DNA from: Mytilus californianus
Lineage: Eukaryota
NCBI RefSeq assembly: GCF_021869535.1
Contig: NW_026262668.1
Coordinates: forward strand, 104,656,001-104,720,000
Reading direction: 5' to 3'
Length of the DNA: 64,000 nucleotides
In this document: positions 38,919 to 63,328 of the stretch, piece after piece
How the letters are laid out: each line of letters starts with the position of its first letter
Position numbering within the stretch: position 1 is the first letter of the stretch
Position numbers and translations under genes: made by a program
The notes under the pieces: model-generated
Told to the model about the DNA's origin: nothing
Databases searched by the model: none
Seen by the model: the letters and a program-made list of their open reading frames with translations, nothing else

Positions 38919-41900
38919 CTATTTCAAAATAAAAATTAACTTCATATAAATATAAGCAAGTAAAAGTCATTCACAATAATTCTACAAGAAATGTAGGCTT
39001 GAGGTCACTTACAATGCAATTTTCCATATATTTCATATTTCCAAGGGTCATAGCTCTCTTAAAATAAATGGGGAATGTGTCCATGGGACACAGATGATGC
39101 CCCCGCTTGCATATTATATAAAGTTATAAAGGGACATAACTGAAGAACAGTAAAAGTGACGATACCCAAATTTGTACGTGATCTGAGTTTTGTGGAAATA
39201 AGTATTGTGTATAAGTTTCATAACATTTGATTGAGGCAAACTTAAGTTAGAAAACGAAAACGAAAAATTCAGCAATTTTTCCATTTGTAATCATAGTTGG
39301 CATAACTCTAGAACAGTAAAAGTGACACAACCAAAATTCAAACTTAATCTGTATTTTGTGGTAATAAGCATTGTGTATAAGTTTCATAACATTTGGTTCA
39401 GGTAAACTTAAGTTGGAGAACGGAAACAAAAAATTCCGCAATTTTTCCATTTATAAACGGGCATAACTCTAGAATTATTAAAGTGACACCACCAAAATTC
39501 AATCATGATCTGTATTATGTGGTAATAAGCATTGTGTATGAGTTTCATAACATTTGGTTTAGGCGAACTAAAGTTAAAGAACGGAAACCAACTTTGGGAT
39601 GTACGGATGGACGGACATACAGATGGACAAGGGTAAAACTTAATGCCCCCACTGCTACAGCGGGGGCATAAAAATAGTTATTTGGCACTGATTTTCAAAC
39701 TTGTCTTAGACATTGCTGATATAAATCTTTTGATATAAATTTCATAAAAATCTGGCAAGAATGGTACACATGCGGCTTACAAGACCAGACAGACACTTGG
39801 TATTTCCATGTCCCCCGCACCTCATTGCACAGTGGACAATAAGGAAGTTTTAAAAAGATATGCACTTCATAAGAATTAATACTAGCATTTTGCACATTTG
39901 ATCTGTTTCATGGATTATCAAATTATTGTGCACTTACAGGTCACATTTGTTTCTATTCAATTGTATAATGTGGTTTCAAAAACCTACTTTGTAAACACTC
40001 AACCTCCACCTAGACTAAGATATTATACTAATATGATCTACAGTACAGAGGAGCATTGGCTACAGTATCAATAATGTCCCCTTTAAACAGTTATAACTTG
40101 CCATGTATAAACACGGCGTAATTGAAAAGGTTTATTAAAGACTTTGAATGCTTGTTCATTGTTGAAGGCCAAAATCAGGATCAGATTTTTTTTTTGGTAT
40201 ACCAGTGCTGTTTGGGTGTCAACTAATTGGCTTTTACTCAATTTTTCCTTTTATAAACGCTTATCCATATAAAATTTAAGATTGATTACCTGTATACGAT
40301 CCTGAACACCTGTACTATCCATGCGACTTGCCACGTTTACACTGTTTCCCCAGATATCATAATGAGGTTTCCTAGCACCAATTACACCTGCCACTATAGG
40401 TCCAACATTCATGCCTAAACAAACAAGTCGTATTACAATTGAGGATAAGTTAAGACTAGTTTAGTTTAAAAATTTAAGTATATAAGTTTTTATGTACATT
40501 TACTGTATATTTTATAAAAAATCATTTTTTCCCAAAATAATAGTTATCAAAGTTATTTTCCCAGAGATTTTCATGGAATTTTCACTTACAACAAACAGTA
40601 GAATTATTCAATGTTTTCTGAAAATTATTTTTAATAATTTTGTGGATTACAGTTTTCAAGAATTAATCATGTTAACACAATCTGAATTTCTGACATCACT
40701 ATTTACCAATTATATATAGTATGAACCCATAATGTCAGAAATGCATTAACATTGTGTTTAAACATAGCATTTAACGAAATAAATCCAAAGTTTAGTTGTA
40801 CTTTCAACTTTTATAGCATATAACTGTCCTTTATGTAGTCTGAATCATAGCTGTTTAACACTTCTTCACCCTATAAGCCAAGGGCTGTTTTATGATGAGT
40901 AGGAGGCAAACATTGAGCAGAAACCTGTTCATTTGGTTAGTGAATATATTTTCAACAGTCAAAATTCACTATTAACAGACTACCTTATATTATCCTTTTT
41001 TTATGAATCTTTTAAGCTAATGCAATACAATTTGTGTTAAAAGCCTGATTTAAGACTTACCAATCCTTAACTTGAAGTTATTGAATGAATGTTCATTGAC
41101 ATACTGGAGTTGTTCTCTGAGTGAGAAAGCAAACTCTGCCAGGGCTACAATATGCCTCATGTCAGCGTAGTTTGTTTCCTTAGTTAAACCTGAGGCTGTC
41201 ATGTAACTCGATCCTATTGTTTTGATTTTTTCTAAACATTTAAATCTCTCTTCACTGATGATCTAAAAATATAACAAATAATTGTTCAAATATACTACAT
41301 ATAAATATATAAATTTATTATTTAAATGGAACTGCAGACCTGAATCAAAGGGAACAATTTTCTCATAAAAATCAGTATGTCATAGAAACAATTTTTACAG
41401 TTGTTCTTTGACTAATTAAGTGAGATATTTTTGTCTTTCAATAGGGGACTACAATTAATTTTTATTAACAAAATGGTGAATGAATGGCCTAAATTGGCCT
41501 ATGAAATGAATTATTACAAAATCTTATGAATTCTATGCTAAAATACATGACAGATAACTGTAGTATAATACATGTATTCACTTTTTAACCCTTTTTGATG
41601 CAATCAGTATATATCAGTGATGATTTTATAAGTTTTGGATGTTTTACCATTGAAAACTGTTTAAAATGAAAGAAGAATGTGTCTGAGGACATGAATTCCC
41701 CCGCTTATGCTCTGCAATTTTCAAAGTTAAAAAGGGGCATACCTCTATAATGGTGACTCACTACACAAATTCGAACTAGGTCTGTGTGTTGTGGTTCTTA
41801 GCATTGTGTATCATTTTCATAAGATTGGAGGGGCCTCGGTGGCCGAGTGGTCTAAGTAGATACTACTGTAATCACTAGCCAGTCAACACTGAGGTTGTGA

Positions 41901-44900
41901 GTTCGAACCCCGCTCGTGCGAGTGCCCTCGACTCCAATCTTAATTGACTAGGATTGTCAGTTTTCCTATGGAAGGTCGGTGGTTTTCTCCGGGCACTCCG
42001 GCCTCCTCCACCAATAAAAACTGGCCGCCACGAAATAGCCCAAAAGCGGTGCTTAAAAGTGGCGTTAAAACACCAAAAATCAAATCAAATCATAAGATTG
42101 GAATGAGTAAAACTTAAGTTAGAGTGTGGAAAATGGGATGGACGGAAAGACGGAAAGACAGAGGGTCAAGGGTAACACTTAATGCCCCTTTTGCCTAGCG
42201 ACAGGGGGCATAAAAAATGCTAGACAGCATGTGCATATATATCTACTCTGAATAATACAAAAGATAGGTTATATCATTCTCTTGATTGTCGTCAGAAACC
42301 AAAAAGTATGTGATAATATAAATACCTCACAAGCTACTTATAATGCAATTCTATAACTGATTGTGAAGAATCAAAATGACTCAAAAATTATATCTATAGA
42401 ATGATTCCAAACCAGTTATGTATAAAAATTGGAAACAAATAGCATGATATTAAACCCTAAAGCAACGTAACTGTAGGGATAAATTTGAGACCTGTTTTGT
42501 CTTTCACACAGACTTTCACACTAAGCGCATATTCAGATAACTGAAGACAATCTTATAGAACTTGTTATATTAACTGAGGTGTGATCTAAGGTTTAGCTCC
42601 TACCTCATCAAAATCAGCTATTATTTCATTCAACAGCCTCAGACATTCCACTCCTTCATTGTTGCCCTCTAACTCAATGTAGAAATCATTAAAGTTGGCA
42701 ATAGATGCAAACATTATTCCTGTGTTATCTATATCTAAATGATACAGATCCTGTAAGAAAATAAAACCATTGTTATATTCCTTCTACAATGGTTAAAACA
42801 TATGCTTTTTCTTAAATTTACTTATCTATTGAAAGGTGTCAAACACAAGAAACTATTGAGAAGTAAAAACAGGAACCTACAATAACATCTCAAAATTTTA
42901 TAACTATTTCTTTTAAAATATAATTATATATGGTAACTCCTGTTATTTCATACAAAAAATATTATTCTGTGTTTATGGTAACGAGATGTCTTTCTTTTAT
43001 TACCTTGGATCTGAGGTTTCTCTTATTGACATTAAAGTATGATTAATATGTTTCAGACAACTCTCCAGATAAAAAAATGGAAAAAATTGAAAGATTATTC
43101 AAAACATTTATACAAACCATGAGGGCATATTTACCTCATCTTTCTTATGTTGATTTTTGAGGAAATTCTCAGCCACATGTAGAGGTAATATATTTGCTAT
43201 CAGTTTGAGATTGTATGCTCGTAAACTTTCCATTTGTTCTTTCTCTTCTGTAGCCTATTATATGAAACCATGATTGATTAATGGGAGAGAGACAGGTTTT
43301 AAAGTGTTCTGTTGTATATTATTAAAATTTGTGAATGTTTGGTGAACAAGGATCAAGAAATGGTCATGTTTGCCAGTCATGACCTAAACTGAAAGCTATT
43401 TTTCCTAAACGGCAGATTGGGATTTAGGACAAATTCATTTATTTTACAGAAATAATTTCGGTCATTTCTTTGAGATCAGGTTTTTTTCTCTCACTATTTT
43501 GCACTTGTTTTGTTTTGTAATCCCTTTCCTGTAATAAAACTGCCACTCCAGTATAGTATGATAATCCTGAGGGCTCTCCTAATAACCATATTACTGGTAA
43601 TGCTCCCTGAAATATTGGCTAATGATCGCTTATCATTTTTCACCTGTGTTTTTTATTCACACCTGACAGTCATTGGTGTAGCTTACGTTGAAGCAACCGA
43701 GGCAGTTGCCTCGGTTAAAAAATAAATTAAAAAAAATAAAAAACTTTTCCTTTTTAATCTTTTAAACGATTTTCACCTTTTTCCACCTATTGCAGCAGAC
43801 TAGCTACTAAACGCTAATATACCGACTAAAATGTTTTGTCTTGTTGTCGCTATTGATTCATACCCTTTGCCAATTCAAGGCTTATAGAAACATTTTCCTC
43901 CTCTACTTGGAAATCCCCTCTACGGTAGTTTTCTGTAATCTAAATTTGTCGGAGTAAAAAAAATCGACAAAATATTTATTTAGTCCTAACCCATTGCAAG
44001 CAAAATCTGTAGAATACGATCGAGTCACTTAATCATTGAATCGGGTAAATTATTTAATTTTGTGTGAGAATAATTTCTAGTATATGTGGGTATGGATGAG
44101 GTTTATAGAAAACAGAAAAATCGGCCCTGAAATTAATTTAAACTTAAAAAAATAGAGATTTGAAATGGTGCTAAAATATAAAAGAATGGAAAATCAAATT
44201 GTGGTCGAAAATAATAAAAAATAAATATTTGAAAACCCCATTCTGATCATTCAAACCCTCATTTATAACCGTGACGTCTAAAATTGAAACATCGGTGTGT
44301 GTTGACATTTTCCCCTACTTGTAGAACTTCAAATACACAGAGTTTCATCGACTTTGGTACCAATCAAAATAAAATATGCATCAATCAACATGCACAGAAA
44401 AAACATTTATATGTTGCGGTTCTCAAGTTTTATTCTAGCGATTTTAAATTTATAGTTTTCACTAGCAGGGAATTTAAATATTTAAAGGATTCACTAATTC
44501 CAGAGAAATATTTATCATATGTCTGTTAGATACATAATGTCAGTTTATATATAAAAATTTCAACCAAATATTGTTTTCATTTATTATGAAGACTTCAGAG
44601 TAACGTACATGTTAGTACTTAGCCGATTGTACTTTCATATTGAATGGAAAAAAGTTCAAAACCATTTAATAATTTGGAGACCTTCCAATGAATACCAGGA
44701 CGAAACACAACCAATACAAGTGCCATGGTGCACTTTACATGTAGCATGTGTTTATCTCCTAGTTCATCAAGAAATTCTGCTGTTCAATCCATCCGTCTTT
44801 TGAGATGATTATCTATAATTCGCTGATTCGTGACCCATGACCAAGGGAGTAAATGATCATCACAAAAATTATTTCAAATAAACCTTAATCCTTGCGTTTG

Positions 44901-47900
44901 TTTTTCTGTATTGAAAATTCTGTACAGGTTTCTTCTGTCCATCGAACAAGGTCATGATTTTTTTTGATATGACGTTAAATCATATGCCACAGTGATGTAC
45001 AGCCACCTATATTAGAGTGTATGACGGCTTGGAAATATATTGGGAGATTAGGTTTTTGAGCTGGCTTTCAGTTATTGCTAGAAAGTCAGGAAACTGACTT
45101 GTCAGTGGTTGTCTTATGTGATATCTTCAAGTGTTTTTTTTAACTTGAGTCGACCATAGATTAGATAGTATCGGTTTAAATCATACACAACTTTCTATAG
45201 ACTCAGGAAAATTTTGAACTGGAGAAATCCATCTCCTGTATTCGTAAAGAATTTTTAATCTGTGTAGTCTACTGAAAGGATTGGATTCTAGTGAAAAAGT
45301 GGTAAATGCTTTTGAATAATGTATTCATCTGAACATTGAAAATGATGCAGGTTCCAGAAATCACAAATAAATCAGTAGTATAACTTAGTGTAAGGCATAT
45401 TAACATTATTATGTTGAATTTAAATTAAACAACAACTATTATTTTTAATAGATTCTTCTTGTTCAAATTGTAAAACCTCGATAGTTTCTGGGGGGCGCAG
45501 ACCCCCTGCATCGGTAAAACCAGAAAGCAAGCTACGCCACTGACAGTGATCACAAGCTCAGAACTATTATTATAAAGAAATTTAAATTCTATGACAACTT
45601 GCTTCATTATTTAATTACTTTTCAGCAAAGACAATCGACAATTCTGATTTAAAATGAAAACTTGATTAATTTACGTAGAAAAAGTAATTTTTCCACGATT
45701 CAAACGTGTTCATTTACTTTATGTAATACACATGTGTTAAATTGTCTTCACCAGATAAGACACTTGCTCGTAAAATGCAAAATGATTTCATGCTAAATTA
45801 AACAAGTATAAGTGCAACTATTATCTGTTATATTCAAACACTTTTAAAGGTAATGAATTAAAATCACACGATTTCCTGTCAATTTGAGAAACAGAACAAA
45901 TCCGGGAAATGAATCCAGAAATACCCGGTTCTCGTAGTTAAGTATTGTCGTGAAACTTGTGGTTTTAATTTTGTCTTCGAAATCAAAAGAAACCTTAGCG
46001 AGAAATTTACCATTTAGAGTCTTTAAAATCATTTCAACATTAAACTGTTGCACTCCATTAACTATTATTGAACGTTTTTAGAAAAATAGCAAGAAAATTC
46101 ATGAGGTAAATGCCATGAAACAGTCCACACAAGTTCTTCGATGCTATGAATCTAGTGGGAATAATTTCAACAGTTTGAAAAAAAGTGGGACAACTCATGT
46201 TTAATTGACATACCAAGAAAATCCTTGAAGTATATATTTTGACATTGCTCCTTTGATTCATAAAAAAAAAACTATCAAATTAAAATCTTATTTAACTTCA
46301 GGTTTTGAATGATTCACACTGCAAATAATCCACTATATTACATATATACTGGCACCACCCTGTAAAAATTATTACTTAGGTTTAGAAAGAAATGCATTGA
46401 ATTACAATTATTTAGGTTTAGAAAGAAATGCATTAATTACAACTACTTATAGATAGAAATGCATTAATTACAACTACTTATAGATAGAAAGAAATGCATT
46501 TAATTACAATTATTTAGTTTTGCATAGAAATGTAGATGTGTAGATGTGCATATAACTTTTTATAACAACTGTGCAAAAAAGCTAAACTTTTGTAGATTTC
46601 GTGTTTCCATAAAATATTTTTCTAAGTTTGAGAGCAATTAACAAAACAGCCTGAAACATAAATTTGCCATTGTTCATAAAAAAAAATCATGCACATCAAC
46701 ATTATACGCACAACTAGGCAAAATTTCATTGGTGTCCTACCAATACTTTTGGAAATTTTGTGTTTACCAAATTTTAGATGGACAAAGTGAAAACTAGAGG
46801 GATCCCACATCCACGATGCGCTAATAAAATATTGGCATGATATCAAAGAGTACATTTGATTTATTTTTGCGAAACATAAGGACTTATGGACTGACCGTCT
46901 TACAGACAGGTCAAAATATATATACCCAAAACCTTTTCTTTATAAAACTACTTAACATATAAAGCATTTTTGTTAACAGACAGTTACGGCTCTCATGGTA
47001 GCAACTAACAGCAACTTAGTTCTGGTACTGACCAGGGGAATCTGACTGTCATATATTTTTTTTTAAAATGGGGACTGTACTGATGACATCCAATAAGAAA
47101 TTCAATATCAAATGTCCTGTTTTCTTCTATTTTTCTGTAAGTAAATTTTATATTTTGGTACATACATGAAGTTGCTGTATAAGCACAAAATACATTTATT
47201 GTCAGCAAATATAAAATTCAAATGTATGTTAGTGTAGCTTTTGAAACATGCACAAAAGTGGCAATGAAAGTTTATTGTCTAAATATAACTAAATGAAAAT
47301 GCCAAAACTCCTCTATAAATTGTTACTGAATTCAAAATGGCCATTTAATACGATCATCAAAAATTTAATTACAAATATCCTATAAAAATATAAGATGTCT
47401 TCTAATTAATTGCATACATTAGATATTTGTGTTATCTATACACTGTACAGGTTAATTAAAAGGGACAAAACTCCATTAGGAAGTTACAATATCAATATGA
47501 TAACAAGATATATGGTCATTTAAACAATGTCCATAAGTTACTTATAAAATACCTGAATTTTCCATAAGAAATCTAATCTTGCAGTTGCTTCAACCTGCTG
47601 ACTGTGTACAAATAACAAAACCACAAAGAAAATCAAAAACAAAATTATCTCCCATTTCAGAGGTATCACCGTCAAGGTATCCCACGTGTTTATACTGGAA
47701 ATAGACAACATACACATATCACAGCTAATAATTCTACAAATGAAAAAAAATTTCAGCTCTATCATAAGTAAAAATAGTGTCTATACTGAAGAACTTAGTA
47801 CCGGACTGATTACCTATTCTAACACAATACCCCAGTGATTACCTTTTCTACCACAATACCCCAGTGATAACCTTTCCTAATGCAATACCCAGTTATAACC

Positions 47901-50900
47901 TATTCTAACACAATACCCCACTGATGAACTTTCTACCACAATACCCCACTGATTACCTATTCTACCACAATACCCAAGTGATAAACTTTTCTAACACAAT
48001 ACCCCAGTGATTAACTTTTCTAACGCAATGCCCCAGTGATTACCTCTCTACCACAATACCCCACGGATGACCTTTTCTACCACAATACCCCAGTGATTAC
48101 TTTTTCTACCACAATACCCCAGTGATTACCTTTTCTACCACAATACCCAAGTGATAAACTTTTCTAACACAATACCCCAGTGATTACCTTTTCTACCACA
48201 ATATCCCAGTGATTACCTTTTCTACCACAATATCCAAGTGATTACCTTTTCTACCACAATACCCCAGTGATTACCTTTTCTACCACAATACCCCAGTGAT
48301 AACATTTTCTACCACAATACCCCAGTGATAACCTTTTCTACCACAATACCCCATTGATAACCTATTCTACCATAATACCCTAGTGATTACCATTTCTACC
48401 ACAATACCCCAGTGATTACCTTTTCTACCACAATACCCCAGTGATTACCTATTCTACCATAATACCCCAGTGATATTCTATTCTACCATAATATTCATGT
48501 GATTACCTATTCTACCATTATTACCCAATGATTATATATTCTACCACAATACCCCACTGATTACCTATTCTATCACAATAACCAACTGATTACATATTTA
48601 ACCACAATTCCGCAGTGATTACATATTCTACCACAATACAGCACCGATTACCTATTCTACCAGATTACCCCAATGATTACCTATTCTACTACAAATCCCA
48701 GTGATTACCTATTCTACCATACTGCACCATTGGTATATGTATATTCTGTTTAGAAAATAGACAGCAAAAGAAGTTTAATCAAACATTAATGAGTTTGGAA
48801 AGTTTGAGATGTGATGTATTTGGATTTGTGTATTTATGAAGGTAAATTCAGAAAAGCTTTCAAACATATCAAATTTAAAAAGTGTTTTTTCATTTTTCTA
48901 CCACTGGGTCAATACCACTGCTGGTGGACTGCTAATCCCCAAATGTATCATCAGCTCAGTAATAAGTCAATTGGAACTAACAGGATTTATTTCATTCTTT
49001 GTTGATAAATTTAGAAATGATTAATAAACTAAAGTTCCAAGTCCCTAAGGCAAAGTTGATCTTAGGTAGATTTGGCTATTCTTTTTAGATCCCTATATAG
49101 CACCTCACGTATTCAAGTATTTATACATCCTTTGGCTTTTAAATTTTTGGATTTGTCAGTTCCTAATGAAAGTATATCCAGACAAGTGCTTTGGACGCAT
49201 CAAATTTATAAAGTGGTATTTTCACTTTAGAGCAATACCAGAGTAATACAATAGTCACAACCATGAGATAGATTTACTTCTTTGGGGTTTATGAATAATT
49301 GGCTCTGTTATAACTATAAAGCTTTGTGTTTTACCATCTGCTGCTATCTAGTTTGCAAAATTAGAACATCAAGATTATTTATTTACTTACCCTCTATTAG
49401 CACTAATAAGAAAATCTCTGTTGTTAAGGAGATCAACAAAGAATACTTCCACCAATAACAAGTGGAAGAATGCCATCACAGTCCATACCAATAATTTCAG
49501 GACACTGCTGGCTTGTATGAACACGCCTAATGCTATCATCACCAACAACATACAAAATGATAGATACTGAAAAATATAAAAACATTCTCTTCTAACGCTA
49601 TCATCACCAACAACATACAAAATGATAGATACTGAAAAATATAAAAACATTCTCTTCTAACGCTATCATCACCAACAACATACAAAATGATAGATACTGA
49701 AAAATATAAAAACATTCTCTTCTAACGCTATCATCACCAACAACATACAAAATGATAGATACTGATAAATATAAAAACATTCTCTTCTAACGCTTTCATC
49801 ACCAACAACATACAAAATGATAGATACTGAAAAATATAAAAACATTCTCTTCTTACGCTATCATCAGCAACAACATACAAAATGATAGATACTGAAAAAT
49901 ATAAAAACATTCTCTTCTAATGCTATCATCACCAACAACATACAAAATGATTTGGACTAAAAATATAAACAGAACACAAGATGGTTTGTATGTCCACTCT
50001 TATTGCTCTCATCACCAACAACATACAAAGTATGCACTGAAAAAACATAACACGGCTGGCTTGTACAAACACTCCTAATGCACTCATCACCAACAATTGG
50101 AAATGTAATAAACAATCTGAGGTCACAATACAATATGATTGAAATACAAGTCATGTGTCCACGCTTTGCTTACATGGATCTGAAAACATTTTGTTCTACT
50201 TTCTATTCTGGTAATTATTACAATAGCCAATGCAATGTCTTCCTTCAAATTTTTAAAGGTGTTTATCATTACGACAAAACCAGAGGATCCCAAAAGTCTT
50301 TAAAACAGAAAGTAGATCGGAGCTGGCTCAGATCTTTGCAAGCAAAGTGTGGACTCAATATTACAATCAGATGGTCACAATACCAATACTACTGAAAATG
50401 TCAAATAATTCTGTGTATCAAAGCAGTACAGTAATGCAGAGAATATCAGTTTAAAAAATTATAGACAGAATGTTCTTAAGTTACAGATAATCTATAATAA
50501 CAGATGAACAGTGATAAGTCACATGATCCTTTGTGCATAATTAGTTATAAATATATCATATTTACCTCTGGAAAATGTGATGTTTTATGTTGAGGATTAC
50601 ATATTGAATTCTCGATACCGAGACTGATATTGGCCTGGTCAAGATGTGTTAGGTTGACTGATGATACAGGAATACCAAAATGCGTGGACAGACATTCTTT
50701 TAAATTATACTGATATACAGACACCTGAAATTACAATATAACTGACAATAAATATAGGAAGCATTCATTTAGTAATAAAAAAATTCAAATATAACTTTTG
50801 GTACACTCTTGTTACTAATTAATTATAAAACAGCTCTTAGAATATGTTCCCATTATAAAATTATGGTATCATATGAGAAGTAAAAACTGTACAATTAAAT

Positions 50901-53900
50901 GTGATATTATCATCACAGTATCCAAGCTAATTATATGATCACTTGATAAAATTGTATATTTTTACGTACATTACATTATACAGTACTTTACTGGAGTGTT
51001 AAAAATCTTCAAGATTTGGATAAGCTGAGGTTCAGTTTGTCTCCATTAAGCATTAACACTCCAGAAGTAGATACCGCATAGCAGTTTTTTTCACAGGTGT
51101 AAAATTTCTCAATTTGGGGCATCCACATATACAAAAAATTTTGGCGGTTATTATTTTAGTGGATTCTTAATTCCCAATTAAATATTTTGGCAGATATTGA
51201 CATGGTTGCAATTATAAAGTTGTAAAAATTAACAGTGAAACATATCTTTGCTGTAGTTCTATATAAATACAAGAAATTAGAAGAAATAATTATTCTAATG
51301 CTAAAAAGAAATACATATGGATAATGAAAAACAATATTTGAGGTAAAACACATGTTTTGAATTGTAAAATATTTACAAAAGTGTATCAAATTTACTTGTC
51401 TTGTGGCGTTTTTGCTAGAGGAAGTCTATCTTATCTATTGATTACATGGCATTTATGTTGTTAAAACTAACATATACTGTTATTGACCTGCTGACCGGAA
51501 TAATATAGATCGTTTACAAAACGCTTTAGCTATTAGAAAGTACGGAACTTATGCATAAATTTTCTCATAATCGTCAGCTTTGGTCTTTAAAGATAACATT
51601 TTTATTGTATAAAACCAGAGATGGGTCTGATTACTTTCAATGTAATTGATTAAATTACAATTACTTTGTCAATTGTAGGATTAAATTAAATTAATGATTA
51701 CACCATTTCTCAAAATAACTAATTAAATCAATAATTACAATGGCAAGTAATCATGATTACATCTGATAACAATGAATTTCAAAATAACCCATTGTATAGA
51801 TGTTAATGAATAAAGGTTAAAATAATCATTAAAATAACATTTTGTTGAAAAGTAATTGATTAAATTAAATTAAAAAATGAATACAGTATGCAATCAAATC
51901 TATAGATTGTCTTGAAGACAAAAGTCGCAGGCTCAACAAAAATGGGAAAAAAATATTAAAAATTTTCCTCTAGATACTATCTTTTGATTGTAGGAAGCTT
52001 CTGTCCAAGTTTGGTAAAAATCCAGGATGGTTTATGAATCTAATAAATGTTTTAAAAACTTTAACTGCAGACTGTATGTAATGTTAACTGGAAGAAAAAC
52101 TAAGTCCATTTATAAGTAATATATGGAATAACAGGAAATAAATTTTTACAAAATTTCCTACTAGATACTAGCTTTTGATCATAAACAAGGTTCTGTCCAA
52201 GTTTGGTAGAAATCCAGGATAGTTTAAGAAAGTTATTGAAATTTTAAAAACTTTAACCACAGAGTGAATGTAATGTTAACTGGCAGAAAAACTAAGTCCA
52301 TTTATAAGTAAAATACAAATAAAACAGGATTTTTTTTTTTACAAAATTTACTTCTGAATACTATCTTATGATCATAAACAAGCTTCTGTCCAAGTTTGGT
52401 AGAAATCCAGGATAGTTTAAGAAAGTTATTAAAATTTCAAAAACTTTAACTACAGAGTGAATATTTGTGGACGCCGCCGCCATCGCAGACGAAGGATTGT
52501 AGGATCAATATGTCTCGCTTTTGCGACAAAAGTCGCAGGCTCAACAAAAATCTAATTTTGAGTTCTTTTCATTCATACTTAGATATAGTAAAAAAAACTA
52601 ACACAAAAAGAAATTTTGATACAAGATGTCTAATACAAAGATCTTAATGTAGGTAAAATATCTTTTTTTTCTAAGCCTTGGGTCATATTTAATTTTTTGG
52701 CTGCATTGAATATCAGTTTTTCAAAGGTCAATTAAACCATATATTTACCAAAACAAAAACCATAATTGTTTTATTCCATATTCCTAGAGATGTTTATGAG
52801 ATATATAATGATACTTGTCATAGGAAATGAGGCACTAGAATGCAGATATTTAATGATACATGTCATAGGAAATAAGGCATTAGAATGCTGATATATAAAA
52901 ATACATGTTATAGGAAATAAGGCACTAGAATGCAGATATATAATGATTCTTGCAATAGGAAATGAGGCACTTGAATGTAGGTATACAATGCTACTTCATC
53001 AAAGAAAACAATGCACTAGAATGTAGGTATATAATGATACTTCATCAAAGGTAATAAGGCACTAGAATGTAGGTATATAATGATACTTCATCATAGGTAA
53101 TAAGGCACTAGAATGAAGATATATAATGATACTTCATCATAGGTAATAAGGCACTAGAATGTAGGTATATAATGATACTTCATCATAGGTAATAAGGCAC
53201 TAGAATGTAGGTATATAATTATACTTCATCATAGGTAATAAGGCACTAGAATGTAGGTATATAATTATACTTCATCATAGGTAATAAGGCACTAGAATGT
53301 AGGTATATAATGATACTTCATCAAAGGTAATAAGGCACTAGAATGAAGATATATAATGATACTTCATCATAGGTAATAAGGCACTAGAATGAAGATATAT
53401 AATGATACTTCATCATAGGTAATAAGGCCCTAGAATGCAGATATATATAGATTCTACCACTGCATCGAGTGTGATACGATATTTATCCACTCGAGACAGT
53501 TAAATTGTCAAATTTAAAAACGCGAGGCTTGCCGAGCGTTTTAAATATTTAAGATTTAACTGTCGAGAGTGGATAAATATTGTATTACACGAGATTTGGT
53601 GGTGGAATCTGTTTCTCTAATGATTTTCAAACAATACACAGGCAAATGTATTTCTTTCTTTTCGAATGATCTGCAAAAAGATGTGTTCTTTCTTTGTGAG
53701 GTCATCAGGCATGGTCGCCTTTTTTCATGCAGTCACAATAGGAAATTCAGAGGAAAGCAAGAAAATTCGACGTCATAATCAGATTTTAACCAATGAAGAA
53801 CAGAGATCAAACGAACCACACATTGATTAAATTTTTTTTAATCAATGGGTGCAAAAAGGGATAAATTGACAAAGAATTAGAGAAATAATGATACTTCATC

Positions 53901-56900
53901 ATGTTCATCTAAGGTAATAAGGCACTAAGATGCAGATATATAATGATACGTCATCAAAGGTAATAAGGCACTAGAATGCAGATGTATAATGATACTTCAT
54001 CAAAGGAAATAAGGCACTAGAATGTGGATACATAATGGCACTTCATCAAAGGTAATAAGGCACTATAATGTGGATACATGATGATACTGAATCATAAGAA
54101 ATAAGGCCCTAGACTGCAGATAAATAGCAATACTTATCATAGAAAATATTGGATTAGAATGCAGATATACAATGATACTTCATCAAAGGAAATATGGCAC
54201 TAGAATGCATATATACAATGAAACTTCATCAAAGGAAATAAGGCACTAGAATTTGGATACATAATGACACTTCATCAAAGGTAATAAGGCACTAGAATGT
54301 GGATACATAATGATACTTCATCAAAGGAAATAAGGCACTAGAATGTGGATACATAATGATACTTCATCAAAGGAAATAAGGCACTAGAATGTGGATACAT
54401 AATGATACTTCATCAAAGGAAATAAGACACTAGAATGTGGATACATAATGATACTTCATCAAAGGAAATAAGGCAATAGAAGGCACATATATAATTATAC
54501 TGCATCAACAGAAATAAGACAATAGAATGGATACATAATGATACTTCATCATAGGTTATAACGCACTAGAATGCAGATATATATAATGATACTTCATCAT
54601 AGGTAATAAGGCACTAGAATGAAGATATATAATGATACTTCATCATAGGTTATAACGCACTAGAATGCAGATATATATAATGATACTTCATCATAGGTAT
54701 TAAGGCACTAGAATGAAGATATATATAATGATACTTCATCATAGGTATTAAGGCACTAGAATGCAGATATATATAATGATACTTCATCATAGGTATTAAG
54801 GCACTAGAATGCAGATATATATAATGATACTTCATCATAGGTATTAAGGCACTAGAATGCAGATATATATAATGATACTTCATCATAGGTATTAAGGCAC
54901 TAGAATGCAGATATATATAATGATACTTCATCATAGGTATTAAGGCACTAGAATGAAGATATATATAATGATACTTCATCATAGGTATTAAGGCACTAGA
55001 ATGAAGATATATATAATGATACTTCATCATAGGTATTAAGGCACTAGAATGCAGATATATATAATGATACTTCATCATAGGTATTAAGGCACTAGAATGA
55101 AGATATATATAATGATACTTCATCATAGGTATTAAGGCACTAGAATGCAGATATATATAATGATACTTCATCATAGGTATTAAGGCACTAGAATGAAGAT
55201 ATATATAATGATACTTCATCATAGGTATTAAGGCACTAGAATGAAGATATATATAATGATACTTCATCAAAGGAAATAAGGCACTAGAATGTGGATACAT
55301 AATGATACTTCATCAAAGGAAATAAGGCACTAGAATGTGGATACATAATGATACTTCATCAAAGGAAATAAGGCACTAGAATGTGGATACATAATGATAC
55401 TTCATCAAAGGAAATAAGGCAATAGAAGGCACATATACCGTAGAAAGGCTTGTATAGTCTGCGGTTTTATTCTCAAAAATTGGACCTTCCAGACGGGGTG
55501 CGGACTATAGAGTACAATAAGCAAGAAATAAGAGAAAAATTTCAATTTCGCGGTCGAGGTGGTTTGTTTACGTTCCGCCATCTTTGTTATTTCTATTGTA
55601 TCATTTTTCAAACTAATAATTTTAACTCATCCATATTAATAAGTTATTTCTATTCAATATCAAATTAATACTGATAAATATAAAAACTAAACCTTTCATT
55701 ACAAATTTCTCGTTTCTTTTCAATGCATTGGTTGAAATAAACTGTTATCTGCTTGATTGAAACGATACAAACATAGTGAAAAAAACAACCGTAAACCAGC
55801 TTAGAATTTGTAAACTACAAAACGAAATCGGTTATTGTTCGTTCCGTTTTGGTGTTTCATACTGACTAATATGGTTTGTATTAGCTTAAGACCCTTCAAA
55901 CATTAATGTGATAGATATATTAAAGACTGTTTTACAAAAGGATGGAACTGTTTTACTTTCAAAGTCGTATTATAGTGATATCTGTTATGTACGGATTTCA
56001 ACTCTCACCGGTTAATTTCTTCTTTTACACATGCTTTTTAAACTTCCTGTTTAAACATACACAAGTTTCTAAATTGTTTTTTAAGTGAATTAAACTTATT
56101 TTAACAATCATGAAGCGTTCTAGAATCATTAACAAGCAGTTTCAGCTTCTGTTTGATGATGGAAAACAGGTTTTTCCAAGAAAATACCGCAAACGACCGC
56201 ACAGGATTTGAAATTACCGGAGTTTCATTAGACCTTTTCTAACAGTTACAAAAAGTTTTTTTACCTAAAATTTCGTGGGGAGAAGGGGGTGCGGACTATG
56301 TACCACTGCGAACTATACAAGCCTTTCTACTGTATAATTATACTGCATCAACGGAAATAAGACAATAGAATGGATACATAATGATACTTCATCATAGGTT
56401 ATAACGCACTAGAATGCAGATATATATAATGATACTTCATCATAGGTATTAAGGCACTAGAATGCAGACATATAATGATACTTCATCATAAGAAATAAGG
56501 CCCTAGACTTCAGATAAATAGCAATACTTATCATAGAAAATAATGCACTAGAATGAAGATATACAATAATATTTCATCATAAGTAATTAGGCACTAGAAT
56601 GCAGATGTATAATGATACTTCATCAAAGGTAATAAGCCACTAGAATGCAGATATATAATGATACTTCATCATAAGAAATAAGGCACCAGAAGGCACTTAT
56701 ATAATGATACTTCATCAAAGGAAATAAGACACTAGAATGTGGATACATAATGATATTTCATCATAGGTAATAAGTCACTAGAATGCAGATATATTATGAA
56801 ACTTCATCATAGGTAATAAGACACTAGAATGCAGATATATATGGATACCTCATCAAAGGTAATAAGGCACTAGAATGCAGTCATATAATGATACTTCATC

Positions 56901-59900
56901 AAAGGAAATAAGGCACTAGAAGGCAAATATATAATGATACTTCATCAAAGGAAATGAGACACTAGAATGCAGATATATAATGATACTTCATCATAGGTAA
57001 TAAGACACTAGAATGCAGATATATATTCATACTTCATCAAAGGTAATAAGGCACTAGAATGCATTTATATTATGATACTTCATCAAAGGTAATAAGGCAC
57101 TAGAATGCAGATAAATAGCAATACTTATCATAGAAAATATTGCACTAGAATGCAGATATATAATGATACTTCATCATAGGTAATATTGCACTAGAATGAA
57201 GATATATAATGATACTTCATCAAAGGTAATAATGCACTAGAATGCAGATGTATAATGATACCTCATCAAAGGTAATAAGCCACTAAAATGCAGATATATA
57301 ATGATACTTCATCATAAGAAATAAGGCACCAGAAGGCACTTATATAATGATACTTCATCAAAGGAAATAAGACACTAGAATGTGGATACATAATGATATT
57401 TCATCATAGGTAATAAGTCACTAGAATGCAGATATATTATGAAACTTCATCATAGGTAATAAGACACTAGAATGCAGATATATAAGGATACCTCAATAAA
57501 GGTAATAAGGCACTAGAATGCAGTCATATAATGATACTTCATCAAAGGAAATAAGGCACTAGAAGGCAAATATATAATGATACTTCATCAAAGGAAATGA
57601 GACACTAGAATGCAGATATATAATGATACTTCATCATAGGTAATAAGACACTAGAATGCAGATATATAATCATACTTCATCAAAGGTAATAAGGCACTAG
57701 AATGCATTTATATTATGATACTTCATCAAAGGTAATAAGGCACTAGAATGCAGATAAATAGCAATACTTATCATAGAAAATATTGCACTAGAATGCAGAT
57801 ATATAATGATACTTCATCATAGGTAATATTGCACTAGAATGAAGATATATAATGATACTTCATCAAAGGTAATAAGGCACTAGACTGCAGATGTATAATG
57901 ATATTTCATCAAAGGTAATAAGGCACTAGAATGTGGATACATAATGATACTTCATTAAAGGAAATAAGGCACTAGAATGAAGATACATAATGATATTTCA
58001 TCATAGGAAATAAGGCACTAGAATGTGGATACATAATGATACTTCATCAAAGGAAATAAGGCACTAGAATGAAGATACATAATGATATTTCATCATAGGA
58101 AATAAGGCACTAGAATGTGGATATATAATGATACTTCATCAAAGGAAATAAGGCACTAGAATGAAGATACATAATGATATTTCATCATAGGAAATGAGGC
58201 ACTAGAATGTGGATACATAATGATACTTCATCAAAGGAAATAAGGCACTAGAATGAAGATACATAATGATATTTCATCATAGGAAATAAGGCACTAGAAT
58301 GTGGATACATAATGATACTTCATCATAGGAAATAAGGCACTAGATTACAGATATATGATGATACTTGCCATAGGAATGCAGATGTATAATGAAACTTGTC
58401 ATAGGAAATAAGGCACTAGAATGTGGATATATAATGATACTTATAGGAAATTAGGTACTAGAATACAAATTTATTATGATACTTGCCATAGGAATGCAGA
58501 TGTATAATGATACTTGTCATAGGAAATTAGGCACTAGAATGTGGATATAAAATGATACTGGTCATAGGAAATTACGCACTAGAATGCAGATGTATAATGA
58601 TACTTCATCATAGGTTATAAGGCACTAGAATGCAGATATATATAATGATACTTCATCATAGGAAATAAGGCATTAAAATGAAGATATATAATGATACATG
58701 TTATAGGAAATTAAGCACTTGAATGCAGATTTATAGTGATACTTATCATAGGAATGCAGATGTATAATGATACTTGTCATAGGAATTAAGGCACTTAAAC
58801 ATAGAAATACCATGACTTTTGCAGCTACAGATTACTTACCACAAGAAATAAGGCCCTAGAATACAAAAATATGATGACTATGAAAGCTATGGTTAAGTAA
58901 TATAAAATCTACAGTTTACTTACCATAGGAAATAAGGCACTTGAATACAGAAATACCATGACTATTTCAGCTACGATTTACTTACCCTAGGAAATAAGGC
59001 ACAGGAATACAGAAATACCATGACTATTGGAGCTATAGGTTACTTACCATAGGAAATAAGGCACAAGAATACAGAAATACTATGACTATTGGAGCTATGG
59101 GTTACATACCATAGAAAATAAGGCACAAGAATACAGAAATACCATGACTATTGGAGCTATTTTTTACTTATCCTAGGAAATAAGGCACTAGAACACAGAA
59201 ATATCATGAATATAGCAGCTATGGTTTACTTACCATAGGGAATTAGGAACTAGAATAAACAAATACCATGACTATTGCTGCTATGGTTTACTAACCATAG
59301 GAAATAAGGTACTAGAATACAGAAATACCAGGACTATTGCAGCCATTGTTTACTTACCATAGGAAATAAGGCACTAGAATACAGAAATATAATGACTATC
59401 ACAGCTACAATTTGATTATACCAATGATTCACAGCTATTGTCCTGGCTATTGCCTTGATTCTCCTAGGTGTCCACTGAAAAAAATAGATGACAGCAATAC
59501 AGTCTAGAGGCATGTTGATCGTTCAAAGCTAAATCTGGGCTATTAGTTATATATCTTGATCAAACCTTTCATATTCACCTTTTTGGGTGAGATTTCAAGT
59601 CTTTGAAATAAATTTTCATCAATAGAAATTGTAATAAACTCTCGACTCTTTAAATCTTAGATTCAAAATTTGTTTTTCTTTTAACATTTTTTTTCTTTTG
59701 AAATACTATGTATTATCATATGACTATAAAATTTATCTTTTCTCATTGGCTAAAAGCATAGGGAATCTTCTTTGATAAAACATATTATTCCACTGTGTGT
59801 AAATATTGATAACGAAACCAACATTTTGGTTGAGACTATTCCACGTAACGTTGAACAAAATTTCATATTCCCCTCTGAATGTTACGCGCAGTTAATGTAT

Positions 59901-62900
59901 TAAACAGTTTAATGTTTTTTTAATAGATATAATATAATAATTTTGTGTTCAAAATTATTTCAGATCTAAACAAAAAAATAAATAAAAATAAATGATGTTA
60001 TAAAACAAGCGAATATGAAAACAATTATGTAAATCAATATTTTATGTTCAGGTAGAAAAAGTATAGGCAGTGGAATAAAACATTCATTTCCCTTGGCTTA
60101 GGGAGATAAAAGATTTTGTTCACCCTCAAAAAGACATATTTCCTAGGGCAATGCCCTCTTGAAATATGAATTTTCTTGGGTGAACAAATCTTCATATCTC
60201 CCTCAGGCACGGAAAATAAATGTATAATATTCACCGCGGGAAAAATCAAGAGAGATAAATAGAAGATTTGGAACAGCTAACATGTACCTAAATAGTTATT
60301 TTCCTAGGCAACATCAATGATGTAGGTTTATAATGTCATGCAAATTCTCTTTTTTTTTCTTCTTTTTCTTTTAGGTGTTATAAATTTTTTCTAGTAAAGT
60401 TTATTGTATAGTAGAATTTGTTTTCTCATTTTCTGATTATTGAACTCATAAAAAGTTTTGATAAACTCTATTCAGGTGATAGACAGATGGGTAAGAAACT
60501 TTAAATCTTCCACATCTTTGTACTGCAGGGTATAATTATTTTACTATTTTAACAATGATAGTACTCAAAAATATAATGTACTAACTTACCATAAATGGTT
60601 CTGATAACATAAGAAAAAATAAACCAAGTATAGCGAGACAGGAGATCGGAAACAACACAAACATTACAACAGACCTGCAAATAGATTAACATTATTTGGT
60701 CAAACAACATTCAAAGCAATACTGTTGTTTCTTTATAGAACTTTAAAATAAAACCCATTTAGCCAGTAAAAGTTTATTTTCGTATGACATGCTGTATCCA
60801 TTTTGCAAATAAAGTAAAATGCGGATGAACTTATCAATAGCAACTAATTAACTTATCAATAGCAAATAATTAACTTATCAATAGCAAATAATTAACTTAT
60901 CAATAGCAAATAATTAACTTATCAATAGCAAAAACTTATCCTCATTATCATAAACTGTTAACACAGAGATATGTCTTGCCTTTTTGTAATTTTGATAATG
61001 CAAATGTTGAAACTAAAATAGCAATACTTTAACATGTAAGTTATGCAAATATTCAAAGTTGACAGGCTAGTGATACAGTAGTTGACTACTTAGACCCCTG
61101 GGTCACCCTTATAAACTAATAGATATATCTTTTAATCTAATAGAGCTATCTTATAAGCAATGAACCATGACTGAAGGTACATGGCTAAACAATCTCCATG
61201 GAAATGAGATGCTCCAATGCTAATACAACTGCATACCAAATACCACTGACTTATCATACGTCGTTCCCTTTAAACAAACCTAAACACAAACATGAACTTG
61301 TAAACTATGTAAAAGTTTCATAGTCAATGAACCATGATGAGGGGGTGGGGCTATATAATCTCCATTGAAATGAGACTTGCAAATGACAATTAATTTGCAT
61401 ACCAAATATCATTGACTTAACATAAGCGTTCATCTTAAACTGATCTAGTCACAAACTAATACATGTAAACTAAGCAAAAAGTTCAAAGTCAATAGACCAT
61501 GACTAAGGGGGCATGGCCAAATATTCTCCATGGAAATGAGATGTGCTAATGCTTATACAACTGCATACCAATTAACATTGGTCTACCACTAATGGTTCCC
61601 CTTGAACTGACCTAATCACAAACTAATACATGTAAACTAAGCAAAGTTTCAAAGTCAATAGACCATGACTGAGGGGACAGGGCCAAATAATCTCCATGGA
61701 AATGAGATGTGCCAATGCTAAATACAACTGCATACCAAATATCATTGACCTACCACTAGTGGTTCCCCATAAACCTGACCTAATCACAAACTAATACATT
61801 GTTGACCCTGCCGCCTCTGCAGCCGGAAACAGCATACCTCAAATACCTTGACTCCATCGAGGCGAGACAAAAATTCAAACTCCATTAACTAAATCACTGT
61901 CAAATGACACGAAAAGAAGGAGAAATATGGTATTTTGTGTCTGCTAGATATACCCATACATTAATTGTATTGTATGCTTGCTACAGTTCCTTTCTAAGTT
62001 ATATGAGAAAGATCTTTTATGCAAATATTAATTGATGGCCTAATCACATTTTAATAATTTAATTGATATGTGCAACATAAAATGAAAACTGTAAGACACA
62101 AATTTGCAGATCTAATAATGCTGGGCTTAATTTGAGAGAAAGTATATGTTATTTGTGGTATCAGCTCTATATATCTATTGGTTATCCAATGAAGAATGCC
62201 AGTAATAATTCATCAAATATACCAGGCTTATAAGTCTATATAAAAATAATAAGATGTGGTATGACTGCCAATGAGACAACTATCCTGCAGAATTCAAATG
62301 ACATAAATGTAAGCAACTTTAGGTCACATTTATTAATGAGCAAAACCCATACAGTACAGTCGGCTATAAAAGATTTATAACAAAATAATTAAAGAAAAAA
62401 ATAAGACAGACATGAACCAATGAAAACCACTGAATAACAGGCTTCTGACTTGGGACAGGCACATAAAGAATGTGACAGGATTAAACATGTTGATGAGTGC
62501 TCAGCCCTTCCCCATTTGCAATTAGTATTTTCTCAGCTTTAATAGATATAACAGAGATCTTACTGTTTTGGAAATCTTGAAAATAATGTCCAAAATGACC
62601 TGAATTCAGATGTAAATATATTTACACTTCTAACAGTCTCTATATTCAGTAGAAATAAATTGAATTACATTAAAAATAAAATGTTGACAAAGAGATGTGT
62701 CTCGCCTGTCCGCATAAAATTCATAAAAAGACAATCTAATGGACAGCAACATGGTTTTTTAATTCAGTCGCTGGACCATTATCTAGAAGGCAAGGCCTGA
62801 AAATAATCGTTAAACTGACATGTACTGATAGTAATGCAACTTTATACAAAATATCATTGATCTATCACCTGTAGATCCTATCAAACTAACTTAAGCAGAA

Positions 62901-63328
62901 AACTTAACATTGAAAATTGCTAATTAATTCAAAGTTACTGGACCATGTCCTAGGGGGCAGGGCCTCAAAATAGTCGTCAAACTGAAATGTACAGATAGTA
63001 ATTCAACTTCATACAAAATATCATTGAGCTATCAAAAGTAGTTCTTATTAACCTAACTTAAGCAGAAAACTTAACAATTGTTGACGCCGTCAATGTCGCC
63101 GCAGCCGTTTGCCGGAAAAGCGATCCATATGTCTCGCTTTCCGCAACTTTCTTCGAACCAAAAATAAAAATTACTATAAACATCAATACATGTGACAATC
63201 TGAAAAACATACTAGAGTGGTGTTACTTACTGTGGTAAAATAACTAAATGTATGGTGCAAACAAATAGCAAAGTGATCAATGTGGAACCAATATGTGATG
63301 TAAACATTGTGTCTCGAACTTTACAATA
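38778..63328 (-). CDS. ADCY: Membrane adenylyl cyclase (rutabaga/ADCY1-like, subtype tentative), 3' half: M2 helices and C2a catalytic domain; 11 exons, 503 aa; 5' exons beyond the window
   Basis: Exons in transcript order: 63231-63328, 60590-60674, 59358-59474, 50566-50724, 49391-49566, 47553-47694, 43135-43254, 42604-42750, 41061-41262, 40290-40414, 38778-38918 (1512 nt; GT-AG; phases match). Motifs [73 protein letters not shown]. Confidence 0.95.
39071..39674 (+). mobile_element. Helentron/HINE-like element with three ~161-166-bp tandem units
   Basis: CATAACT-anchored units at 39135, 39301 and 39462; GGAC microsatellite; 3' hairpin TGCCCCC..GGGGGCA at 39644-39668, then ATAAAAA. Confidence 0.75.
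40290..40414 (-). CDS. Adenylyl cyclase exon (C2a)
   Basis: [42 protein letters not shown]. Confidence 0.96.
41061..41262 (-). CDS. Adenylyl cyclase exon (C2a)
   Basis: [40 protein letters not shown]. Confidence 0.96.
41674..42217 (+). mobile_element. Helentron/HINE-like element (same family as 39071-39674) interrupted by a SINE
   Basis: Same 5' GAATGTGTC start and unit sequence; 3' hairpin TGCCCC..GGGGGCA at 42183-42210. Confidence 0.75.
41829..42089 (+). mobile_element. Full-length tRNA-derived SINE (V-domain-like core) with a 12-bp target-site duplication
   Basis: A box TGGCCGAGTGG, B box GTTCGAACCC, core GGTTTTCTCCGGGCACTCCGG, (CAAAT)n tail. TSD TCATAAGATTGG at 41817-41828 and 42090-42101. 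Confidence 0.9.
42604..42750 (-). CDS. Adenylyl cyclase exon (C2a start)
   Basis: [49 protein letters not shown]. Confidence 0.96.
43135..43254 (-). CDS. Adenylyl cyclase exon (helical domain)
   Basis: [40 protein letters not shown]. Confidence 0.95.
43671..45542. mobile_element. ~1.87-kb non-autonomous TIR transposon, hAT-like termini, apparent 5-bp TSD
   Basis: Left end CATTGGTGTAGCT; right end AGCTACGCCACTG (2 mismatches in 13). ACAGT flanks both ends (43666-43670, 45543-45547). Confidence 0.55.
46377..46520. repeat. Short tandem repeat, ~4 units of 29-36 bp
   Basis: AGAAATGCATTAATTACAA block repeated four times. Confidence 0.75.
47553..47694 (-). CDS. Adenylyl cyclase exon (last TM helix)
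   Basis: [47 protein letters not shown]. Confidence 0.95.
47805..48722. repeat. 29-bp minisatellite, ~31 copies
   Basis: Unit GATTACCTTTTCTACCACAATACCCCAGT; 29-bp spacing (e.g. 48181 to 48210). Confidence 0.95.
49391..49566 (-). CDS. Adenylyl cyclase exon (two M2 helices)
   Basis: [39 protein letters not shown]; GTAAGT donor, phase 2. Confidence 0.9.
49527..50120. repeat. 65-bp tandem array made of a 3' splice site plus exon head, with older diverged copies
   Basis: TAGATACTGA recurs at 49561, 49626, 49691, 49756, 49821 and 49886. Diverged copies extend to ~50120. Confidence 0.93.
50566..50724 (-). CDS. Adenylyl cyclase exon (extracellular loop)
   Basis: [30 protein letters not shown]; 159 nt; phase 0/0; joins to YLSFC. 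Confidence 0.88.
51917..52551 (+). mobile_element. Helentron/HINE-like element with three ~192-bp units, bounded by a 27-bp direct repeat
   Basis: TTCTGTCCAAG at 51999, 52191 and 52384. GACAAAAGTCGCAGGCTCAACAAAAAT at 51917 and 52525. GCGACAAAAGTCGC hairpin near the 3' end. Confidence 0.7.
53448..53885. mobile_element. Hairpin-type non-autonomous element inserted in the satellite
   Basis: Palindrome 53449-53610 centred on GGCTTGCC (53526-53533), then inverted repeat TTTCTCTAAT/ATTAGAGAAA. Confidence 0.85.
55438..56332. mobile_element. 895-bp Tc1/mariner-type MITE with TA duplication
   Basis: TIR CCGTAGAAAGGCTTGTATAGT vs ACTATACAAGCCTTTCTACTG (1 mismatch). TA at 55436-55437 and 56333-56334. 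An empty twin site is present at 54484-54496. Confidence 0.9.
58790..59357. repeat. 62-bp tandem array made of an exon tail plus 5' splice donor, ~9 copies
   Basis: 62-bp spacing (58921 to 58983). The minus-strand unit ends TTATTTCCTATG|GTAAGT, as does the real exon end at 59358. Confidence 0.93.
59358..59474 (-). CDS. Adenylyl cyclase exon (M2 helix); source of the satellite
   Basis: TTTTTTCAG acceptor; [39 protein letters not shown]; GTAAGT donor; phase 0/0. Confidence 0.88.
59785..60225. mobile_element. Hairpin-type non-autonomous element
   Basis: 11-bp inverted repeat TTATTCCACTG (59785)/CAGTGGAATAA (60068), then palindrome 60080-60223 centred on GGGCAATGCCC. Confidence 0.8.
60590..60674 (-). 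CDS. Adenylyl cyclase exon (M2 helix)
   Basis: [28 protein letters not shown]; TTTGCAG acceptor, GTAAGT donor. Confidence 0.87.
60829..60938. repeat. 22-bp tandem repeat x5
   Basis: Unit AACTTATCAATAGCAAATAATT. Confidence 0.9.
61100..61873 (+). mobile_element. Helentron/HINE-like element with four ~166-bp tandem units
   Basis: CCATGA-anchored units at 61165, 61332, 61497 and 61663; ends GGCGAGACAAAAA. The left boundary is approximate. Confidence 0.65.
62240..62510 (-). mobile_element. Copy of the abundant repeat matching the 3' end of the element at 1-1580
   Basis: Reverse complement matches GTGCCTGTCCCAAGTCAG..CTCATT..GTTGTCTCATTGGCAGTCATACCACATCTT (cf. 1305-1572). Confidence 0.7.
62690..63150 (+). 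mobile_element. Helentron/HINE-like element with two ~167-bp units
   Basis: GGACCAT at 62773 and 62940; TGTCTCGC at both ends; GCC-rich 3' part. Confidence 0.6.
63231..63328 (-). CDS. Adenylyl cyclase exon (first M2 helix); most 5' exon in the window
   Basis: [32 protein letters not shown]; TCTTTTCAG acceptor; GTAAGT donor; phase 2 completes Gln with the next exon. Confidence 0.87.

Follow-up and report, generated by a model that had tools for sequence, protein, structure and literature searches.

A satellite-sized array in an intron of an adenylate cyclase 5/6-like gene of Mytilus californianus probably grew from the adjoining exon end and 5' splice site

We describe a long tandem array lying in an intron of an adenylate cyclase type 5/6 (AC5/6)-like gene of the mussel Mytilus californianus, within a window of 64 kb (contig NW_026262668.1, positions 104,656,001 to 104,720,000) whose own numbering is used throughout. 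The gene is read on the minus strand, and the intron in question, 59357-50725, measures 8633 nt, its 3' end being set by the start of the next exon at 50724. The repeat units of the array are copies of the last 52 or 38 nt of the exon immediately upstream, followed by a copy, intact or mutated, of the 5' splice site of that exon. We propose that this is very probably a boundary-spanning minisatellite of the type named "mirage" in amphioxus, which would have grown to satellite size through an amplified unit lacking the donor GT and which is most likely functionless.

Ten minus-strand exons with canonical splice sites, from 63328-63231 through 38918-38781, join into a 471-aa frame without stops, which aligns end to end with human AC6, a Styela AC6-like protein, termite AC6 and a moth AC5-like protein. 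This frame spans the second transmembrane block and then the C2 cyclase domain, in the order found in named AC5/6 proteins, and by this alignment the host gene is assigned to the type 5/6 group of membrane adenylate cyclases. The source exon, at 59358-59463 on the minus strand, is supported by its single open frame, by the 471-aa splice and by the acceptor and frame argument given below. The minus strand is open from 59474 to 59358 (WTPRR...SSALFPM), with stops in both other frames, a polypyrimidine tract and AG before and GTAAGTAAAC after; the exon tail ends in ...CCTATG, and the authentic 5' splice site, ATG/GTAAGT, lies at 59352-59357. The exon codes for the end of a transmembrane helix, and its last 52 nt constitute repeat unit number one. 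Since the Styela and termite proteins end a helix at the same place in the alignment, the tail can be read as ordinary, old coding sequence. The next exon (50566-50724, minus strand), placed by its splice sites and frame continuity and matching AC6 weakly, codes for an extracellular loop with N-glycosylation motifs and the conserved cysteine of that loop.

The acceptor of the source exon has two AGs 11 nt apart, corresponding to exon starts at 59474 and 59463, and only the second is in frame. The upstream exon 63328-63231 ends in CA/GTAAGT in phase 2; joined to 59474 it runs into an immediate stop, whereas joined to 59463 it gives an open frame, so that the exon probably starts at 59463. A preliminary description of this stretch, made from the letters alone, had placed the exon at 59358-59474: its end and its GTAAGT donor stand as quoted there, while its start has to be moved to the second AG, a change which leaves the exon tail and the repeat finding as they were. 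An attempt to reach the orthologous mussel protein by a search with exon 41262-41053 was set aside, having returned mostly fragments and non-mollusc AC5/6; full-length bird AC6 as the query returned vertebrates only, and the one mollusc match (Nucella) was no closer to the window than human AC6. The case for the reality of the exon is thus built on the window sequence together with distant homologues.

The repeat comprises two arrays that run into one another. Next to the exon, nine extra 62-nt units occupy 58778-59351 on the minus strand, each consisting of 52 nt of exon tail and GTAAGTAAAC, that is, 52 exon and 10 intron nucleotides in native order. These units are spaced 62 nt from 59379: the array abuts the authentic junction, and its first monomer is the real exon end. 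They are about 15% apart from each other, and one of the nine carries a 22-nt insert. The 62-nt array then passes gaplessly into 45-nt units (38 nt plus ACAAGTA) of a longer array at 52800-58777 (minus strand), made up of about 100 units whose length is 45, 46 or 48 nt and in which 38 nt of exon tail are joined to a mutated donor (ACAAGTA or ATGAAGTA), 7-8 nt derived from the intron. The 45-nt units sit at both edges of this long array (58723-58345 and 52975-52840), 46-nt units ending in ATGAAGTA make up its bulk, and a central block (54571-55241) holds 14 near-identical 48-nt units with an extra TA; some 31-nt partial units are also included. Each of the short units is identical to the exon tail at 24 to 35 of 38 positions. 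Tandem Repeats Finder (TRF) reports the first array as 62 bp x8.0 with 85% matches at 58914-59407, overlapping the last 50 nt of the exon, and the second as 46 bp, nominally x128.6, at 52799-58752, a copy count which includes two non-repeat insertions of 903 and 437 bp; our figure of about 100 short units leaves both out. From 59357 to 52800, the repeat spans 6558 nt, or 76% of the intron, and the net repeat still accounts for about 60% once the two insertions are removed.

The resemblance to the exon junction is well beyond chance. Out of 60 positions, the 62-mer consensus shares 56 with the exon tail and donor; the 46-mer consensus, once rotated to start at TCATTATA, agrees with GTAAGTA and the 38 exon bases before it at 41 of 46, one gap being needed. 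In alignments of arrays to exon junctions controlled by shuffling, z was 35.2 for the 62-mer and 12.1 for the 46-mer, and 36.8 for the 65-mer of a second junction array described further below; the seven other tandem arrays of the gene, compared with all exon junctions, stayed at noise level (z from -1.4 to 1.8). A 22-nt core, allowing up to 3 mismatches, gave 105 matches, all on the minus strand between 52819 and 59379, with none elsewhere in the 64 kb and none expected from 100 shuffles. The preliminary description had read the 46-bp monomer as 38 nt of exon tail with a mutated donor and the 62-bp array as about 52 nt of the same tail plus GTAAGTAAAC, together filling roughly three quarters of an 8.6-kb intron; these readings are all borne out, including by the TRF run and consensus-to-exon alignment that it had put forward as a check.

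The copies carry donor sites with them. GT is kept in 7 of the 9 decoys of the 62-nt type (59295, 59233, 59109, 59047, 58985, 58923 and 58839), one of the others having changed to AT and one to AC; three are identical to the 9-mer of the real donor, ATG/GTAAGT, the variant AGG/GTAAGT matches the consensus equally well, and altogether four to five are the equal of the real donor in their match to the 9-nt consensus. Among the 97 short units scored, none keeps GT at the homologous place, a loss that counts as one founder event and is not open to statistical test, since all short units descend from one founder. Read-through past the real donor meets a stop 7 codons into the intron, so that use of any decoy donor would give a transcript with a premature stop. 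The array would be transcribed as part of the intron, and we infer that the real donor is chosen because it is both first in line and the sole one to keep the frame; the array would then act by lengthening the intron and by lining up decoy donors in it.

Such a row of sites could be thought to do something. The donor copies, or the long array as a whole, might recruit the U1 small nuclear ribonucleoprotein or other factors and thereby exert repeat-based control on splicing of the cyclase, by tuning use of the real donor, by slowing removal of the intron or by guarding a long intron from premature cleavage. Seven strong GT decoys do lie less than 600 nt from the real donor, a second array puts six acceptors in line at the next exon but one, and use of the first pseudo-site or the first two is on record for some human genes (PMC1557585). 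However, the donor shows no sign of being better conserved than the rest of the 62-nt unit, which has drifted by about 15%, and the unit that was amplified in mass has dispensed with GT entirely; the published cases act as silent by-products, and no shared motif was found outside the locus, either in the 64-kb window or in a protein search with the translation of the array. We regard a functional decoy array as improbable and hold that the minisatellite most likely has no function of its own.

The inner structure of the long array bears on whether it is real. A shift-identity scan revealed a 643-bp block of 14 units duplicated at 99.7%, the 48-nt block at 99.3% and a 92-bp dimer pattern at 98.3%. 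The edges of the array are divergent and its centre is homogenised, the 45-nt edge variants being those closest to the exon. At 55434-56336, one copy of a duplicated array segment is interrupted by a transposon-like insertion of 903 bp (no strand assigned), with 32-nt terminal inverted repeats that are 88% complementary and a TA target duplication; the uninterrupted, empty paralogous site near 54490-54500 shows the TA duplication, and no second copy of the element occurs within the window. We take this element to be a non-autonomous one of the Tc1/mariner type. The second insertion, 437 bp at 53449-53885 (no strand assigned), is not made of repeats and has an 80-nt near-palindrome at one end (53449-53610).

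Unequal exchange in a real array would leave edges that diverge around a homogenised centre, higher-order repeats nested in one another and a transposon matched by an empty paralogous site, all of which are seen here and would not be invented by an assembler. An array produced, wholly or for most of its length, by assembler expansion or a mis-join is a slightly poorer prospect than a functional one: most units depart from their neighbours according to a pattern, edge, bulk and centre each having variants of their own, and two unique insertions lie within, one of them with its target-site duplication and empty counterpart. Near-identical stretches such as the 14 x 48-nt block and the 643-bp duplication are nevertheless prone to miscounting, and one published mirage was mis-assembled in a draft genome (PMC3087553), so that copy numbers inside such blocks could be off.

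The direction of copying can be read from the consensus sequences. Over the 38 bases shared by all, the exon differs from the 62-mer at 2 positions and from the edge 45-mer at 2, the 62-mer and the 45-mer differ at 4, and the 45-mer and 46-mer at 2. The distances are additive (2 + 2 = 4) with the exon at the internal node, which would fit an ancestor held still by selection, unlike an exon captured from either family; moreover, the exon part of the 62-mer is longer than that of the short unit by 14 bases. The old coding tail, the additive distances and the 14 extra bases argue together that the exon is the source of the arrays and not a captured repeat, in line with the earlier proposal of a satellite born from coding sequence at a splice junction with its source still adjacent. 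That the process ran the other way, a pre-existing intronic or dispersed satellite having supplied the last 38 to 52 nt of the exon and its donor, is the least probable of the alternatives, for although similarity alone gives no direction and the search covered the 64-kb window, the helix end coded by the tail is colinear with AC5/6 of a tunicate and of insects and is followed by the conserved loop cysteine, the exon stands at the node between the two families and not within one, the 62-mer reaches further into unique exon sequence, and no copies lie elsewhere in those 64 kb.

The two arrays can also be placed in order. The 62-mers retain the native intron bases at +8 to +10 (AAC or close variants), where a junction already trailed by 45-mers would read TCA; the 62-nt array therefore appears to have arisen first, on the native junction. 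The 45-mer was probably seeded later, from an exon-like copy of the junction at the far end of the 62-nt array, and that copy probably still had the TTATA of the exon and not the TGGTA found there today. The preliminary description had envisaged two differently sized duplications of one junction, amplified to about 9 and about 100 copies: these counts are upheld, whereas the second duplication would have occurred inside the 62-nt array and not at the live junction.

We propose the following sequence of events for this boundary-spanning minisatellite. A 62-nt segment over the exon/intron junction, from exon -52 to intron +10, would have been duplicated in tandem, most likely through replication slippage or unequal exchange, a mechanism that we infer, and then expanded to about 10 units. 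A shorter segment of 45 nt (38 exon-derived nt plus GTAAGTA) of an exon-like copy at the far end would next have been duplicated; this unit would have lost its GT and grown to about 100 units by unequal exchange, passing through variants of 45, then 46, then 48 nt and through higher-order blocks. The AAA triplet present at both ends of the 62-nt segment, exactly 62 nt apart, may have favored the initial event. Several points weigh against this account. Microhomology of three A residues counts for little where the DNA is AT-rich. Simple nested duplication predicts the native AAC at the far end of the short-unit array, which terminates in a partial unit instead, so that the history of seeding is not fully settled. 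The single-locus status of the array is that seen within the 64-kb window, and the monomer may have spread elsewhere in the genome. Finally, that the first donor is the one used and that the decoys stay silent is a deduction from the DNA.

Arrays of this kind have already been described, in amphioxus (PMC3087553) and at human genes such as F7 (PMC1557585), and the mussel array has the structural features of boundary-spanning minisatellites. In amphioxus, mirages are tandem units lying across an exon-intron boundary, as in Adh3, troponin C and the globins BflGb6/9 (PMC3087553), PGBD5 being a further example (PMC3902484). In the same account, their units measure 10-160 bp, 5' and 3' boundaries are both affected and many, not all, units keep AG/GT, while splicing proceeds normally, length is prone to change and the edges escape homogenisation (PMC3087553). 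The mussel unit likewise crosses the boundary and adjoins the real junction, with both types of boundary affected in one gene, and the array shows the same partial retention of GT, homogenised centre and divergent edges. It departs from mirages, which count from a few to some tens of units, by its ~110 units and 6.5 kb, by its secondary shorter unit, higher-order repeats and transposon insertions, by total loss of GT in the amplified unit and by its mollusc host; allelic or somatic instability has been shown in amphioxus, whereas the mussel array is known from one assembly.

In human genes, minisatellites with a first monomer that crosses an exon-intron boundary include F7 IVS7 (37 bp, x5-9), IFI6 (25 pseudo-sites), CBS IVS13 (x15-20), LMNB2 (100 bp, x10-15) and PDGF (81 bp, x16-18) (PMC1557585). 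For F7, Borensztajn et al. reported that, of several identical donors, the one furthest upstream is alone in use and explained this by 5'-to-3' scanning, and use of the most upstream site only, with the same explanation, also holds for LMNB2 and PDGF (PMC1557585). As in these three genes, the mussel donor is reiterated downstream of the real one, and 5'-to-3' scanning is the likely reason why the mussel decoys would be harmless. The F7 unit, however, includes 4 exon bases and the mussel unit 38-52, and human arrays have 5-25 units with splicing measured, whereas splicing in the mussel is deduced. The array also calls to mind the Rogers model of intron gain by tandem duplication across an AGGT proto-splice site (discussed in PMC3087553), in that it starts from a tandem duplication copying splice signals; unlike in that model, the mussel copies lie inside an existing, conserved intron position and make no new intron or exon. 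A literature search found no report of a boundary-spanning minisatellite in a mollusc, nor any for this locus, which does not prove that none exists.

Classical satellite DNA of bivalves is derived from transposons or Helitrons, occurs at many loci and is often heterochromatic. The mussel array is like it in having about 100 copies of a unit tens of bases long, which evolve in concert and form higher-order repeats, and differs from it by its origin from a coding exon plus splice site and by its single intronic locus within the 64 kb. The cyclase locus taken by itself is an ordinary, though large, example of its kind. It nonetheless adds a mollusc to the hosts of the mirage type, with a copy number roughly tenfold that usually seen, and it indicates that coding sequence plus a splice site can seed an array of satellite size while the source gene stays intact. 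In bivalve genomes such arrays, which present series of apparently perfect splice sites along with short open frames, lead gene prediction and read mapping astray, and they are likely to be hypervariable markers.

The same gene carries a second junction array, independent of the 62- and 46-nt ones. At 49527-49969 on the minus strand, a 65-nt unit repeated 6.8 times at 96% identity combines a 3' splice site with the first 38 nt of exon 49566-49391, before which it stacks six extra acceptors; use of an upstream acceptor would shift the frame. Older, degraded copies containing a longer piece of the exon extend upstream to about 50126. Two independent junction arrays among about 10 arrays in one gene have a probability near 0.05, by a rough estimate that assumes 4.4% per array. 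A doubtful hypothesis would be that mussel genomes harbor a mutational process seeding arrays at splice junctions far above chance, and that growth beyond some tens of copies occurs only after inactivation of the donor. Loss of GT in the big array, being a single founder event, proves nothing on its own about expansion of donor-dead units, an idea that we offer as a hypothesis. If such a seeding process exists, the 6.5-kb array would exceed every mirage seen so far and would preserve, in nature, the traces of selection against decoy splice sites; if the bias toward junctions is genome-wide, mussels would be a good system in which to study the origin of tandem repeats and the disregard of decoys by the spliceosome.

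Exact look-ups of the open reading frames (ORFs) of the source exon, of the next two exons and of the array gave no match, and a homology search with the 62-aa exon ORF gave no candidates. The 219-aa translation of the array had no match among 5.8 billion proteins, a set that does not cover the mussel genome, which also lies outside the coverage of two metagenome DNA scans in which no match was found.

Several further repeats lie in and around the gene. A 29-bp array (x31.6, 47807-48719), just upstream of exon 47694-47553, was considered as a third junction array on account of a donor-like AAG/GTAATC and was rejected, its similarity to exon junctions being at shuffle level. The 36-, 193-, 22- and 21-bp arrays and both 166-bp arrays were likewise discarded, none being similar to exon junctions above shuffles. 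The 193-bp repeat (x2.7, 51938-52462, 84-85% identity, z = 1.8) lies in the same intron as the long array, just past its far end. The two 166-bp tandem arrays, of 3.8 and 2.9 copies, are found in cyclase gene introns and flank at 61164-61799 and 39124-39588, and the former has a diverged copy at 62813-63068.

Two Logan contigs, L001 and L002 (runs SRR29152236 and SRR15505939), have 76-88% DNA identity to the window in aligned segments; they align against 40687-47992 and cover downstream exons only. Both encode an identical 50-aa stretch of the C2 domain, and their introns there are far shorter, two parts of the introns in the window being absent: 47532 to 43640 (about 3.9 kb) and 42398 to 41396 (about 1 kb). 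They come either from a related species or from a diverged paralog, and the 29-bp array is also present in L001 (1-238), at 72-83% identity.

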